A DNA stretch of 64,000 bases. Origin: Macrostomum lignano. Lineage: Eukaryota. Every line of letters starts with the position of its first letter. Positions within the stretch are counted from its first letter, which is position 1. A model generated the notes under the pieces. The model made no database searches and had not been told where the DNA came from. It saw only the letters and a list, made by a program, of their open reading frames with translations. The translations under genes were made by a program, and so were the position numbers. Below, in pieces: positions 43,401 to 49,400 of this stretch. The DNA lies in NCBI GenBank assembly GCA_002269645.1, contig NIVC01000923.1:10180-74179 (forward strand), in the 5' to 3' direction.

Positions 43401-46400
43401 GAGAGGAGAGAAGAGGAGAGAGAAGAGGAGAGAAGAGGAGAGAGAAGAGGAGAGAAGAGGAGAGAGAAGAGAGAGATGAGGAGAGAGAAGAGGAGAAGAG
43501 GAGAGAGAGAAGAGGAGAGAGAAGAGGAGAGAGAAGAGGAGAGAGAAGAGGAGAGAGAAGAGGAGAGAAGAGGAGAGAGAAGAGGAGAGAGAAGAGGAGA
43601 GAAGAGGAGAGAGAAAAGGAGAGAAGAGGAGAGAAAAGAGGAGAGAAGAGGAGAGAGAAGAGGAGAGAGAAGAGGAGAGAGAAGAGAAGAGAGAAGAGGA
43701 GAGAAGAGGAGAGAGAAGAGGAGAGAAGAGGAGAGCGAAGAGAGAGATGAGAGATGAGGAGAGAGAAGAGGAGAAGAGGAGAGAGAGAAGAGGAGAGAGA
43801 GAAGAGGAGAGAGAGAAGAGGAGAGAGAAGAGGAGAGAGAAGAGGAGAGAGAAGAGGAGAGAGAGAAGAGGAGAGAGAAGAGGAGAGAGAAAAGGAGAGA
43901 GAGAAGAGGAGAGAGAAGAGGAGAGAGAAGAGGAGAGAGAAGAGGAGAGAGAGAAGAGGAGAGAGAGAAGAGGAGAGAGAGAAGAGGAGAGAGAAGAGGA
44001 GAGAGAAGAGGAGAGAGAAGAGGAGAGAGAGAAGAGGAGAGAGAAGAGGAGAGAGAAAAGGAGAGAGAGAAGAGGAGAGAGAAGAGGAGAGAGAAGAGGA
44101 GAGAGAAGAGGAGAGAGAGAAGAGGAGAGAGAAGAGGAGAGAAGAGAGAGAGAGAGAAAAGGAGAGAGACAGAAGAGAGACAATGGGAGGAGAGAAGAGG
44201 AGAAACGGGGAGAGAGGAGAGAGAAGAGGCGAGAGAAAAAGAAGAGAGCTGAGAAGAGACAAGCCTTGAGCGGACCGGATTGCTATTGCGAAGTTTCAAA
44301 GGATCCGAGGGCCGGATTGAGAGGCTTAGCGGGCCTATAAACACTCACTTGACAATGAAATCGCAGTTGGCGTCGGCCAGAATGCTTCGCTCATTCATGA
44401 TGTGCTCCTGCTGTCGGGTCTCAACAATGTGATGCTTCTTGAGCTGCTTCAGAGCAAAACTGCGGCTGTTGTCGTTGCGGATTCGAACCTTGGAGCGGCG
44501 ATTGAGTCGGTGATTGACAGCCAGATGAAGGACGCTACTTCAAAAACAGCACATTAAAAACGCGATTCAGATGCACTAAATCGCATAGTTCAGAAAATTC
44601 AGTCACACAGCTGAATCTGTATTCAGTCACACACACACACACCTGAATCTGTATTCAGTCACACACCTGAATCTGTATTCAGTCACACACCTGAATCTGT
44701 ATTCAGTCACACACCTGAATCTGTATTCAGTCACACACCTGAATCTGTATTCAGTCACACACCTGAATCTGTATTCAGTCACACACCTGAATCTGTATTC
44801 AGTCACACACCTGAATCTGTATTCAGTCACACACACACATGAATCTGTATTCAGTCACACACACACCTGAATCTGTATTCAGTCACACACCTGAATCTGT
44901 ATTCAGTCACACACCTGAATCTGTATTCAGTCACACACACACACAAACACACACCTGAATCTGTATTCAGTCACACACACACACAAACACACACCTGAAT
45001 CTGTATTCAGTCACACACCTGAATCTGTATTCAGTCACACACCTGAATCTGTATTCAGTCACACACCTGAATCTGTATTCAGTCACACACCTGAATCTGT
45101 ATTCAGTCACACACACACACACACCTGAATCTGTATTCAGTCACACACACACACCTGAATCTGTATTCAGTCACACACCTGAATCTGTATTCAGTCACAC
45201 ACACCTGAATCTGTATTCAGTCACACACCTGAATCTGTATTCAGTCACACACACACACCTGAATCTGTATTCAGTCACACACACCTGAATCTGTATTCAG
45301 TCACACACACCTGAATCTGTATTCAGTCACACACCTGAATCTGTATTCAGTCACACACACCTGAATCTGTATTCAGTCACACACACCTGAATCTGTATTC
45401 AGTCACACACACACACCTGAATCTGTATTCAGTCACACACACACACCTGAATCTGTATTCAGTCACACACACACACCTGAATCTGTATTCAGTCACACAC
45501 ACACACCTGAATCTGTATTCAGTCACACACACACACCTGAATCTGTATTCAGTCACACACACCTGAATCTGTATTCAGTCACACACACCTGAATCTGTAT
45601 TCAGTCACACACCTGAATCTGTATTCAGTCACACACACACCTGAATCTGTATTCAGTCACACACACCTGAATCTGTATTCAGTCACACACACCTGAATCT
45701 GTATTCAGTCACACACCTGAATCTGTATTCAGTCACACACACCTGAATCTGTATTCAGTCACACACACCTGAATCTGTATTCAGTCACACACCTGAATCT
45801 GTATTCAGTCACACACCTGAATCTGTATTCAGTCACACACACCTGAATCTGTATTCAGTCACACACCTGAATCTGTATTCAGTCACACACCTGAATCTGT
45901 ATTCAGTCACACACACACACACCTGAATCTGTATTCAGTCACACACACACACCTGAATCTGTATTCAGTCACACACCTGAATCTGTATTCAGTCACACAC
46001 ACCTGAATCTGTATTCAGTCACACACCTGAATCTGTATTCAGTCACACACACACCTGAATCTGTATTCAGTCACACACACCTGAATCTGTATTCAGTCAC
46101 ACACACCTGAATCTGTATTCAGTCACACACCTGAATCTGTATTCAGTCACACACACCTGAATCTGTATTCAGTCACACACACACACCTGAATCTGTATTC
46201 AGTCACACACCTGAATCTGTATTCAGTCACACACCTGAATCTGTATTCAGTCACACACCTGAATCTGTATTCAGTCACACACCTGAATCTGTATTCAGTC
46301 ACACACCTGAATCTGTATTCAGTCACACACACACCTGAATCTGTATTCAGTCACACACCTGAATCTGTATTCAGTCACACACCTGAATCTGCATTCAGTC

Positions 46401-49400
46401 ACACACCTGAATCTGCATTCAGTCACACACCTGAATCTGTATTCAGTCACACACACCTGAATCTGTATTCAGTCACACACCTGAATCTGTATTCAGTCAC
46501 ACACACCTGAATCTGTATTCAGTCACACACACCTGAATCTGTATTCAGTCACACACACCTGAATCTGTATTCAGTCACACACCTGAATCTGTATTCAGTC
46601 ACACACCTGAATCTGTATTCAGTCACACACCTGAATCTGTATTCAGTCACACACACCTGAATCTGTATTCAGTCACACACCTGAATCTGTATTCAGTCAC
46701 ACACACCTGAATCTGTATTCAGTCACACACCTGAATCTGTATTCAGTCACACACCTGAATCTGTATTCAGTCACACACACACCTGAATCTGTATTCAGTC
46801 ACACACCTGAATCTGTATTCAGTCACACACCTGAATCTGTATTCAGTCACACACCTGAATCTGTATTCAGTCACACACCTGAATCTGTATTCAGACACAC
46901 ACCTGAATCTGTATTCAGTCACACACCTGAATCTGTATTCAGTCACACACCTGAATCTGTATTCAGTCACACACCTGAATCTGTATTCAGTCACACACCT
47001 GAATCTGTATTCAGTCACACACCTGAATCTGTATTCAGTCACACACACACCTGAATCTGTATTCAGTCACACACACCTGAATCTGTATTCAGTCACACAC
47101 ACCTGAATCTGTATTCAGTCACACACACCTGAATCTGTATTCAGTCACACACACACCTGAATCTGTATTCAGTCACACACACCTGAATCTGTATTCAGTC
47201 ACACACACCTGAATCTGTATTCAGTCACACACCTGAATCTGTATTCAGTCACACACACCTGAATCTGTATTCAGTCACACACCTGAATCTGTATTCAGTC
47301 ACACACCTGAATCTGTATTCAGTCACACACACCTGAATCTGTATTCAGTCACACACACCTGAATCTGTATTCAGTCACACACCTGAATCTGTATTCAGTC
47401 ACACACCTGAATCTGTATTCAGTCACACACACACCTGAATCTGTATTCAGTCACACACCTGAATCTGTATTCAGTCACACACCTGAATCTGTATTCAGAC
47501 ACACACCTGAATCTGTATTCAGTCACACACCTGAATCTGTATTCAGTCACACACCTGAATCTGTATTCAGTCACACACACCTGAATCTGTATTCAGTCAC
47601 ACACCTGAATCTGTATTCAGTCACACACACCTGAATCTGTATTCAGTCACACACACCTGAATCTGTATTCAGTCACACACACCTGAATCTGTATTCAGTC
47701 ACACACCTGAATCTGTATTCAGTCACACACCTGAATCTGTATTCAGTCACACACCTGAATCTGTATTCAGTCACACACACCTGAATCTGTATTCAGTCAC
47801 ACACCTGAATCTGTATTCAGTCACACACCTGAATCTGTATTCAGTCACACACCTGAATCTGTATTCAGTCACACACACCTGAATCTGTATTCAGTCACAC
47901 ACCTGAATCTGTATTCAGTCACACACCTGAATCTGTATTCAGTCACACACACCTGAATCTGTATTCAGTCACACACCTGAATCTGTATTCAGTCACACAC
48001 CTGAATCTGTATTCAGTCACACACCTGAATCTGTATTCAGTCACACACCTGAAGCTCACAGGTAATAACAATACGACTCACCAGCTCGACGCGACCGAAG
48101 CCGCCAACTCCAAGAGTGGCAATGATGAACAGGTCCTTCAGCGTTAAACCCTTGAATTCTTCAGATCGACTGTCATTGAATATGCATTTTCAAAAAAAAT
48201 CTGTTATTCCATTTCTGAAAAAATAACCTTCGATTTAAAAAAAAGGCCACGAAAATCTCAGCAAAACTCACGAAGGCTGTGCAGTGCTCTCGTCTGAGTA
48301 CTTCCTGCCCAGAATGGCCAGATCCCCTATGAGCTGTTTGTAAGACCTGGTAGGGTGAATGCGGATTTTTATTGAGGGTTAATGGAGAGGTTAATTTAAT
48401 TTATTTTCTTAAGAAAGCAGACATTATCACAAACAGTATAGATTACGAAAAGACAGAAAGCAAATTATTAAATAAATTATTTTCACACTATAAATATTAG
48501 CAGATATTAGCCCCGATAAAAGCAACTCATTTTTAGAGCCAGTTTTTAGAGCGCAAATCCCAATGCTGTGAGAATGGTTTGTTATTTTTTTAAAAAGAAA
48601 ACCCACTCTAAAATTACCGAAGCAACAAATTTGCTTACTCGTGCTGGGTAAGATTGCTGAAATAATGATTACTTTGCAAGTTAATAAACATAAGCTTAGA
48701 ATAGGCTCCAATAAGATGATTGATTTAAACAATTAGTCAGACAGATAGCAGGGCAGAAGAGTTAATGCTCAGAACTTACTCTCTATTGAGAACGAGACAG
48801 TCCACTCCGTTAGGGTCTTCAACAATGATGTTGGCTGTGCGCACGTCCTCCCTGAAATGCGGATGTACAATTTGGTCTTGGACTCGGAAACTCCGGCCCG
48901 CGAAGCCTCTCTATCCGGCCCTCGGGTCCTTTAAAACTTCACAATGGCAATCCGGCCCACTCAAGGCTTGTCTCTTCTCAGCTTTTCTCTCTCGTCTCCT
49001 CTCTTCTCTCCTCTCTTCTTCTCTCTCATCTCCTCTCTTCTCCTCTCTCATCTCCTTTCTTCTCTCCTCTCTTCTCCTCTCTCATCTCCTCTCTTCTCTC
49101 CTCTCTTCTCCTCTCTCCTCTCCTCTCCTCTCCTTTCATTTCCTCTCCTTTCCTCTCTCTTCTCCTTTCCTTTCTTCTCCACTCCTTTCTCCTCTCCTCT
49201 CCCTTCATCAATTTTATCCCTCTCCTGTCTTCTCCTTTATTCCCTCACCTTATCTCCTTTCTCCTTTCTCTTTACTGATCCTTGATGTAGCCGCACAGGA
49301 GCGAGCAAGCATAGCTAAAAACAGACCGTAAAACACTGAGAGCACTCACTCGTTAAGCGCCTTCTCGCCGAACCAGTCGCCGCGGCCCATATTCCTGATG

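Follow-up and report, generated by a model that had tools for sequence, protein, structure and literature searches.

An inverted intronic repeat around exons 6 to 9 of a Macrostomum lignano PKG gene as a candidate setting for back-splicing or exon skipping

Four exons of a PKG gene in the flatworm Macrostomum lignano are bracketed by the two arms of an inverted repeat, which lie in the introns on either side. This layout raises the question of whether the repeat is a regulatory device that directs these exons into a circular RNA or out of the mRNA, or whether it is an incident of intron evolution with at most minor consequences for splicing. A preliminary description of the locus favoured the first answer and spoke of a "TE-wired" regulatory RNA switch. 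The structural prerequisites for back-splicing or for skipping of exons 6-9 are all present and strong, while the selected switch, the TE origin and translation of the circle are unsupported. Any back-splicing or skipping here is probably an incidental, low-level by-product and no selected regulatory device.

The PKG gene and its inverted repeat

The window, that is, the whole 64-kb stretch of contig NIVC01000923.1 that was analysed, carries the PKG gene BOX15_Mlig030852g1 on its minus strand. Its annotated protein (P0241) contains the Pfam domain PF00027 twice, followed by PF00069 at residues 380-635. In a protein search with the 581-aa spliced PKG as the query, identity to PKGs of molluscs, arthropods and a brachiopod was 65-69%; the 125-aa peptide of exons 6-9 retrieved just short fragments. 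The domain order, two cNMP-binding domains ahead of a Ser/Thr kinase, together with the nearness to annotated PKGs, identifies a cGMP-dependent protein kinase. Exons 6-9 all have GT-AG splice sites and are included in the annotated protein, in which they encode residues 315-439. These cover the RTA motif of cNMP-B (318-320), the GxGxxG motif (383-388) and the catalytic Lys (406). The exons concerned are:

49350..49586, minus strand: PKG exon 5, flanking exon and donor of the skip junction
48780..48851, minus strand: PKG exon 6, 72 nt, with the cNMP-B RTA motif
48272..48346, minus strand: PKG exon 7, 75 nt, linker
48082..48169, minus strand: PKG exon 8, 88 nt, with the GxGxxG loop
44349..44488, minus strand: PKG exon 9, 140 nt, with the catalytic Lys and the sole in-frame ATG of the putative circle
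42973..43062, minus strand: PKG exon 10, flanking exon and acceptor of the skip junction

The arms had been described as 88 bp long with 8 differences, 4 of which become G-U pairs in the pre-mRNA, and all of this was reproduced. Positions 44248-44335 and 48895-48982 are reverse-complementary at 80 of 88 nt (blastn E=2.7e-31), and no more than these two copies occur in the 64-kb window by blastn. In the minus-strand PKG pre-mRNA the arms pair through 80 Watson-Crick and 4 G-U pairs with 4 mismatches; in antisense RNA there would be just 2 G-U pairs. The distances from stem to splice sites (43 nt before the exon 6 acceptor, 13 nt past the exon 9 donor) likewise agree with the description, and the GA/CT extension of the stem that it claimed is real, though low-complexity, both in the blastn alignment and in the global fold. 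With this extension the inverted blastn alignment covers 404 nt at 76.7% (43936-44335 against 48895-49271). The parts of the repeat and the adjoining tandem arrays are:

48895..48982, minus strand: upstream arm, in intron 5, the 5' arm in the pre-mRNA, matching its partner at 80 of 88 nt
44248..44335, minus strand: downstream arm, in intron 9, the 3' arm in the pre-mRNA, with 84 of 88 nt paired with the upstream arm in the global minimum free energy (MFE) fold
48852..48894, minus strand: spacer of 43 nt from the stem to the exon 6 acceptor
44336..44348, minus strand: spacer of 13 nt with the exon 9 donor (GTGAGTGTTTATA)
48983..49271, minus strand: degenerate purine-rich minisatellite (GA in RNA) that adjoins the upstream arm and lengthens the duplex (TRF arrays 48971-49202, blastn inverted alignment to 49271)
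43281..44247, minus strand: pyrimidine-rich 12-mer minisatellite of ~1 kb (UC in RNA) that adjoins the downstream arm (TRF 43281-44263, period 12, 81 copies)
44597..48053, minus strand: 24-mer minisatellite of ~138 copies that fills intron 8, inside the putative loop

The 43-nt spacer must contain the branch point and the polypyrimidine tract. A stem that closes exactly at the bases of both splice sites is unusual and could hint at function.

Predicted folding of the pre-mRNA

Cofolding of the two arms gives -169 kcal/mol, where shuffled sequences reach -54 +/- 4.6, and cofolding of intron 5 with intron 9 gives -572 kcal/mol. A global fold had been proposed as a check on the stem, and in the MFE structure from exon 5 to exon 10 (intron 8 array trimmed) 84 of the 88 arm nucleotides indeed pair with the partner arm. 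In the same structure intron 5 has 349 of its 498 nt paired with intron 9, giving a duplex of ~350 nt. Self-blastn found no competing within-intron partner for the arms; pairing across the introns thus beats pairing within them both in this search and in the trimmed global fold. On these models a very stable long-range duplex would form in the pre-mRNA, loop out exons 6-9 and set the exon 9 donor beside the exon 6 acceptor.

Alternatively, the intronic duplex could act mainly as a dsRNA substrate, for A-to-I hyper-editing or for Dicer-derived endogenous small RNAs, rather than on splicing. A duplex with a predicted near-perfect core of 88 bp and ~350 paired nt overall is long enough for dsRNA-binding enzymes. 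Being purely intronic, however, it would yield small RNAs with no target beyond the same introns, and a literature search on ADAR found nothing relevant for Macrostomum. This role appears very unlikely.

Reading frame of the candidate circle and of the skip

The frame properties that had been claimed for exons 6-9 hold. Their lengths add up to 375 nt (72+75+88+140), with the codon split 2+1 at both boundaries. A back-splice would create a Lys codon (AA/G) and a circular frame with one in-frame ATG and no stop, and a skip from exon 5 to exon 10 would stay in frame through a Glu codon (GA/G) and lose the cNMP-B RTA motif, GxGxxG and the catalytic Lys. The junctions predicted from the sequence are:

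Minus strand, back-splice junction of exon 9 to exon 6: ...GCGATTTCATTGTCAA / GGAGGACGTGCGCACAG...
Minus strand, skip junction of exon 5 to exon 10: ...AGGCGCTTAACGA / GCTCTACCGAACATTC...

The sole AUG of the putative circle corresponds to Met422 of P0241 and has an A at -3. With 375 nt divisible by 3, 0 stops in the native frame and this one AUG, the predicted circle would contain an infinite ORF. It shares these features (multiple of 3, stop-free, internal AUG) with infinite-ORF circRNAs such as circRUNX2.2 (PMC11545863). For cases of that type translation was shown experimentally, whereas in PKG this is a reading-frame property only. A stop-free circle results of necessity whenever internal coding exons together have a length divisible by 3, as one third of such exon sets are expected to have, so that the prior is ~1 in 3.

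Comparison with known circRNA loci

The layout is that of known circRNA loci, with complementary flanking sequences and with the AG at exon 6 and the GT after exon 9 close to the stem. Inverted repeats of 30-40 nt suffice for circularization (PMC4201285), and the 88-nt arms are well above this length. As in the human loci with Alu pairs (ZKSCAN1 and HIPK3; Liang & Wilusz 2014, PMC4201285), reverse-complementary sequences of the flanking introns lie near the acceptor and the donor. Unlike the Alu pairs, the PKG repeat is no recognised dispersed TE, is represented by just one pair in the sampled sequence and carries a purine/pyrimidine extension of ~300 nt that is low-complexity and G-U-rich, and its circRNA is a prediction. 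The circRNA of Drosophila laccase2, which was verified experimentally and is modulated by hnRNP and SR proteins, provides an invertebrate parallel, in that inverted repeats of the introns (DNAREP1_DM) likewise lie beside the splice sites and bracket the circularized exon (Kramer et al. 2015, PMC4617980). In laccase2 a single exon and a known repeat family are involved, whereas the predicted PKG circle would comprise four exons and its repeat is of no recognised family. Mouse Sry, whose circular transcript serves as the model example in PMC4201285, has a long, highly stable inverted repeat by which coding sequence is looped out and splice sites are brought together, as predicted here; the Sry repeats span tens of kilobases around the single exon of a gene-specific transcript, compared with an 88-nt core and a degenerate extension in PKG.

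A different route leads through exon-containing lariats (Barrett et al. 2015, PMC4479058). The lariat left by an exon 5-10 skip would hold exons 6-9 and could re-splice to the same 375-nt circle, so that skip and circle would be coupled outcomes. This route works without inverted repeats, and no skip isoform is known for this PKG gene.

The locus is hence a textbook candidate for back-splicing or exon skipping, and by established circRNA biology it should allow some formation of the 375-nt circle, some exon 5-10 skipping, or both. The amount could be high. A short upstream intron and a low-complexity, G-U-rich extension are, however, features that can inhibit circularization (Liang & Wilusz 2014, PMC4201285). 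Intron 5 is short (498 nt) and is transcribed ~4.6 kb before its partner, which suggests that it is likely spliced first.

Age and apparently neutral decay of the arms

The inverted pair is present in all three near-identical assembled PKG copies (the window copy and the loci L003 and L005), and no homology to the arms was found in the older PKG paralogs L001 and L002. Introns 5 and 9 have identical positions and phases in these two paralogs, in which the repeat is lacking; intron 9 of L001 is only 81 nt long. The repeat thus appears to have arisen after the split of the PKG paralogs and shortly before that of the three copies. Between the arms there are 8 differences in the window copy, and 4 plus a 13-nt deletion in the upstream arm in the other lineage (L003 and L005). 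All are one-sided and lineage-specific, which means that the arms were essentially identical when the gene copies split.

Subsequent change shows no sign of selection on pairing, albeit with the low power of two lineages: double-sided, compensatory changes number 0, one-sided changes have turned 5 pairs into G-U, 5 pairs are disrupted, and the arms have not evolved more slowly than the intron around them. Divergence between copies is 10/163 (6.1%) in the arms, 21/326 (6.4%) in flanking unique intron and ~1% in exons. Tract lengths vary freely, as seen in the lengths of intron 9 in the three copies (1286, 388 and 349 nt). As just two independent arm lineages exist, the missing compensatory change and the neutral rate have little power, and a recently acquired functional element would show the same pattern.

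These observations bear on the proposal that selection maintains the repeat as an RNA switch on PKG, producing either an abundant exon 6-9 circRNA, possibly translated endlessly, or an in-frame, kinase-dead skip isoform that modulates PKG signalling. The proposal draws on the 88-nt core with its extension, a stem without competing partner that closes at 43 and 13 nt from canonical splice sites, the stop-free 375-nt circle with an A at -3 of its one AUG, the loss of GxGxxG and the catalytic Lys in the in-frame skip, and the retention of the repeat in three gene copies. Yet the stop-free frame is automatic for such exons, the arms change one-sidedly and as fast as neutral intron, with 13 nt lost in one of the lineages, both older paralogs do without the repeat, and low-complexity, G-U-rich pairing can inhibit circularization (PMC4201285). 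Furthermore, a second pair of inverted arrays in the same PKG gene brackets the terminal exons 12-13, and as it flanks the terminal exon, back-splicing is impossible there. No exon 5-10 skip isoform of the gene is on record in the protein database, a weak argument as transcripts assembled from M. lignano reads are apparently not included, and nothing relevant was found in the circRNA literature on Macrostomum or flatworms. Taken together, a selected switch is unlikely. Its fullest form, in which abundant 375-nt circRNA, the kinase-dead exon 5-10 isoform or both tune PKG signalling and the circle is translated into a repeating polypeptide of cNMP-B tail and kinase N-lobe, is very unlikely; if true, a flatworm would have a copy-specific regulatory circRNA of recent birth. 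Of the earlier interpretation in terms of back-splicing or skipping, the structural prerequisites therefore stand, and the regulatory switch and the TE wiring do not.

Origin of the repeat

An assembly artefact might be suspected, such as a palindrome from a missed PacBio adapter or repeats that were joined wrongly, as the contigs come from a redundant and highly repetitive PacBio assembly (PMC5730564) and the end of the window is the end of the contig. The pair occurs on three separate contigs with their own substitutions and indels in each, however, and the 4.6 kb between the arms are non-palindromic and hold conserved exons in the correct order, so that the chance of an artefact is negligible.

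The reading that we favour, and hold to be reasonably likely, is that an intron segment was duplicated in inverted orientation, recently and in this lineage only, probably locally and through minisatellite turnover, and that the copies have since decayed neutrally. The duplicated segment would have consisted of the 88-nt unique core and the adjoining purine/pyrimidine minisatellite; its two copies lie in introns 5 and 9 of a single M. lignano PKG gene, both of which existed before. Like the tandem arrays that occupy 63% of the gene, the repeat would be a result of minisatellite turnover. Two copies 4.6 kb apart and none elsewhere in the sampled sequence favour a local inverted duplication; this argument draws solely on the distribution of copies in ~130 kb of independent M. 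lignano sequence.

Perhaps a dispersed mobile element (SINE-, MITE- or Helitron-like) with a simple-repeat tail or internal array has instead inserted twice, independently and in opposite directions, in the manner of the Alu pairs of human genes and of the DNAREP1 pairs known from Drosophila laccase2. Both arms show the same sharp boundary (...GCGGGCC) with a tract of simple repeats next to it, which would fit an element end with its tail. More than half of the M. lignano genome consists of TEs and repeats (PMC5730564), and the repeats that flank circRNAs usually come from TE pairs in opposite orientation (PMC4201285, PMC4617980). Against this, a third copy is absent from the window and from five other M. 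lignano loci (~130 kb of independent sequence), and two independent hits within 5 kb with none elsewhere have a rough p of ~0.01. JGI metagenome contigs contained no copy of the 88-mer either, a result that carries no information on this point. Searches of the arms revealed neither a tRNA-like region nor an Rfam match, so that a known RNA family or a tRNA-derived SINE was rejected. Nor could a TSD or terminal inverted repeats be clearly recognised; the outer arm ends are lost in minisatellite. A mobile-element origin is possible, though doubtful, and the "TE-wired" label of the preliminary description finds no backing.

Two further candidates were rejected. An introner origin conflicts with paralogs that lack the element and yet have introns 5 and 9 in unchanged position and phase, and with arms that lie 43 and 13 nt off the splice sites. 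Capture of exons 6-9 by a foldback or Pack-type transposon conflicts with the exons themselves, which are single-copy, keep their order and are collinear with exons 5 and 10 throughout the paralogs.

Minisatellite context and outlook

Tandem arrays make up 38% of the window and 63% of the PKG gene span; in the M. lignano genome 15% consists of simple and tandem repeats (PMC5730564). Every unit of the 24-mer minisatellite in intron 8 contains a 6-bp hairpin (CTGAAT/ATTCAG). A third "inverted repeat" in the window (30039-30104 against 35710-35775) turned out to be merely CAA/CAG polyglutamine-coding repeats on opposite strands.

The feature mainly illustrates how the minisatellite-rich introns of M. 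lignano spontaneously form long inverted repeats around exons, and anyone who annotates this genome or analyses its RNA-seq data should be prepared for such repeats. If the circle is made, the locus would offer a clean, datable case of circRNA birth in an animal in which transgenesis is possible and in which copy-specific junctions let each gene copy be scored. The first base of exon 6 is A in L003 and L005 and G in the window copy, so that reads can be assigned to their copy.

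Structure and coding content of exons 6-9

The cGMP-dependent protein kinase (PKG) gene was rebuilt from splice consensus, frame and homology, and every intron of the resulting model is GT-AG.

Exons of the rebuilt PKG gene
60203-60369, minus strand, exon 2
59826-59942, minus strand, exon 3
54276-54381, minus strand, exon 4
49350-49586, minus strand, exon 5
48780-48851, minus strand, exon 6
48272-48346, minus strand, exon 7
48082-48169, minus strand, exon 8
44349-44488, minus strand, exon 9
42973-43062, minus strand, exon 10
42426-42854, minus strand, exon 11
41287-41416, minus strand, exon 12
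40435-40530, minus strand, exon 13, stop at its end

The window is 100% identical to contig NIVC01000923.1 (GCA_002269645.1; gene BOX15_Mlig030852g1, protein PAA74786.1). The spliced product of 581 aa was given by the search as 100% identical to a Macrostomum lignano PKG, and exons 6-9 as defined here match exactly within PAA74786.1. PKG also has alternative N-terminal (leucine-zipper) exons, comparable to those of vertebrate PKG I-alpha and I-beta. The first exon of the annotated protein is 61621-61941, while the proteins of two near-identical assembled copies, L003 and L005, have instead a pair of exons lying about 8 kb upstream of it (3001-3075 and 4872-5177 in L003), past the contig end at window position 64000. 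Both alternatives were found in 5/5 M. lignano PKG loci.

Exons 6-9 (375 nt, residues 315-439) encode the RTA motif at the end of cNMP-B, the linker, GxGxxG (383-388) and the catalytic Lys406, so that, as the preliminary description proposed, skipping from exon 5 to exon 10 would keep the frame and lose the end of cNMP-B and the kinase N-lobe. Its arithmetic for a back-splice from the exon 9 donor to the exon 6 acceptor was likewise correct: the codon is split 2+1 at both boundaries of the block, the codon across the junction is AAG, and the putative 375-nt circle is free of stops and contains a single in-frame AUG. The endless frame comes automatically with coding exons whose combined length is divisible by three.

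Inverted repeat and predicted RNA folding

The arms bracketing these exons, 44248-44335 in intron 9 (downstream) and 48895-48982 in intron 5 (upstream), match as reverse complements at all but 8 of their 88 nt, and pair in the minus-strand transcript through 80 Watson-Crick pairs and 4 G-U pairs with 4 mismatches, in agreement with the counts first reported. Either arm as a blastn query against the whole window returned its partner only (E=2.7e-31), with no further match above noise. On its outer side each arm adjoins a degenerate purine/pyrimidine minisatellite.

Minisatellites adjoining the arms
43281-44263, beyond the downstream arm, period 12, 81 copies
48971-49202, beyond the upstream arm

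The proposed GA/CT extension of the stem was recovered by self-blastn as an inverted alignment of 43936-44335 versus 48895-49271 (404 nt, 76.7%), and the claimed spacers of 43 and 13 nt between stem and splice sites recur in the rebuilt model.

Cofolding of the two arms gave -169 kcal/mol versus -54 +/- 4.6 for shuffled partners, with single-arm self-folds of -23 and -16 kcal/mol at most. Intron 5 and the first 500 nt of intron 9 are predicted to form a near-continuous, G-U-rich duplex (-572 kcal/mol). In the global MFE structure from exon 5 to exon 10, computed after cutting the intron 8 array down to 960 nt, 84/88 arm nucleotides paired with the partner arm and 349/498 nucleotides of intron 5 with intron 9. 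Self-blastn found no competing complementary sequence inside either intron, the only other partner of the GA tract lying about 10 kb upstream and matching at 67%. Within intron 8, 44597-48053 (3.5 kb) is taken up by about 138 tandem copies of the 24-mer ATTCAGTCACACACCTGAATCTGT, each with a 6-bp palindrome (CTGAAT/ATTCAG), so the intron RNA would be a chain of small hairpins.

Likelihood of back-splicing or skipping

Inverted repeats of 30-40 nt beside splice sites are enough for circularization, circRNA yield is not predictable by thermodynamics alone, and possible inhibitors include G-U wobbles, sequence of low complexity and greater repeat length (PMC4201285). An ideal core with splice signals at the stem base stands for circularization, and the G-U-rich, low-complexity extension against it. 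In addition, intron 5 is short and transcribed about 4.6 kb ahead of its partner, and may therefore often be removed before the stem forms. No exon 5-10 skip isoform of the gene was found in the protein database, nor any circRNA study on Macrostomum in the literature. Back-splice reads could equally well be present in or absent from deep total RNA-seq; an abundant or regulated circle or skipped isoform is unlikely, and translation of the circle highly improbable. The preliminary interpretation is partly supported: back-splicing or skipping mediated by the inverted repeat can legitimately be proposed for this locus, a candidate addition to a well-known class of inverted-repeat-flanked back-splicing loci.

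Divergence among gene copies and paralogs

The published M. lignano assembly is redundant owing to duplicated chromosomes in the sequenced line (PMC5730564), and L003 (NIVC01000922.1) and L005 (NIVC01000163.1) both carry the inverted pair. In a six-arm alignment the L003 and L005 arms are identical, leaving two arm lineages, and each difference occurs in a single arm of a single lineage: 5 upstream and 3 downstream changes in the window copy, and a 13-nt deletion plus 1 change upstream and 3 changes downstream in the other lineage. It follows that the arms had essentially the same sequence at the time the copies split and have decayed since.

Divergence between the window copy and L003
Arms: 10/163, 6.1%
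Flanking unique intron: 21/326, 6.4%
Exons: 17/1747, about 1%

Arms diverging like the flanking intron, with no double-sided pair changes (5 were one-sided to G-U and 5 pairs were disrupted), speak against the claimed regulatory switch. Tract lengths are also free to vary across the three copies, with lengths of 498, 832 and 996 nt for intron 5, 3593, 2071 and 2751 nt for intron 8, and 1286, 388 and 349 nt for intron 9. Two older paralogs, L001 and L002 (86% and 82% protein identity), have introns 5 and 9 at the same positions and phases and no detected arm homology, intron 9 of L001 being only 81 nt, which indicates that the element entered introns that already existed, in a single paralog lineage.

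At 48262-48797 (exon 6 to intron 7) the three copies are mosaic: for about 0.6 kb the window matches L003 exactly and L005 differs at about 40 sites, while on either side L003 and L005 group against the window. From the alignment this looks like a gene-conversion tract between the duplicated gene copies, whose ends do not match the arm positions. Window intron 9 (about 43110-43250) holds about 100-140 nt of sequence (…GGTCGGCAAACTTTATAACTCAAGGGCCGGAAAT…) unique to this copy and missing in L003 and L005, and L003 intron 5 (about 23730-23960) an AT-rich insert of about 230 nt amid the purine tract.

Origin of the repeat

The proposed transposable-element (TE) origin found no backing in the arms, which have no tRNA-like region, Rfam match or recognisable target-site duplication; independent M. 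lignano sequence totalling about 130 kb yielded no third copy. By a rough calculation, random independent insertion would give a pair less than 5 kb apart and no other copy with a probability of about 0.01. PKG contains a second local inverted pair, arrays of the 28-mer TCACTGTGTGTCACTGTGCAGCCATGCT in opposite orientation (38365-38947 and 41517-42409; 98% identity over 571 nt), lying about 1.5 kb beyond the stop codon and in intron 11. The three gene copies all carry this pair, L003 and L005 with lower identity. Between its arrays lie exons 12-13 and the stop codon, where back-splicing is impossible. Of the whole window 38% is tandem array, a share that rises to 63% over the PKG gene span. Given the lack of TE hallmarks and of a third copy in the sequence sampled, the second inverted pair and this array density, a local inverted duplication tied to minisatellite turnover is favoured over two TE insertions. 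Taken together, the results favour a young repeat by-product that evolves neutrally over a regulatory switch wired by a TE.

Array periods in the window range from 2 to 170 nt, many being 18-28 nt; one 20-mer array spans 4.5 kb (25356-29831). Downstream of PKG, a long Gln/Ala/Pro-rich ORF lies on the minus strand (34552-36291). An apparent inverted repeat, 30039-30104 versus 35710-35775, consists only of CAA/CAG repeats on opposite strands, suggesting that the plus strand near 30 kb has another polyQ-coding stretch.
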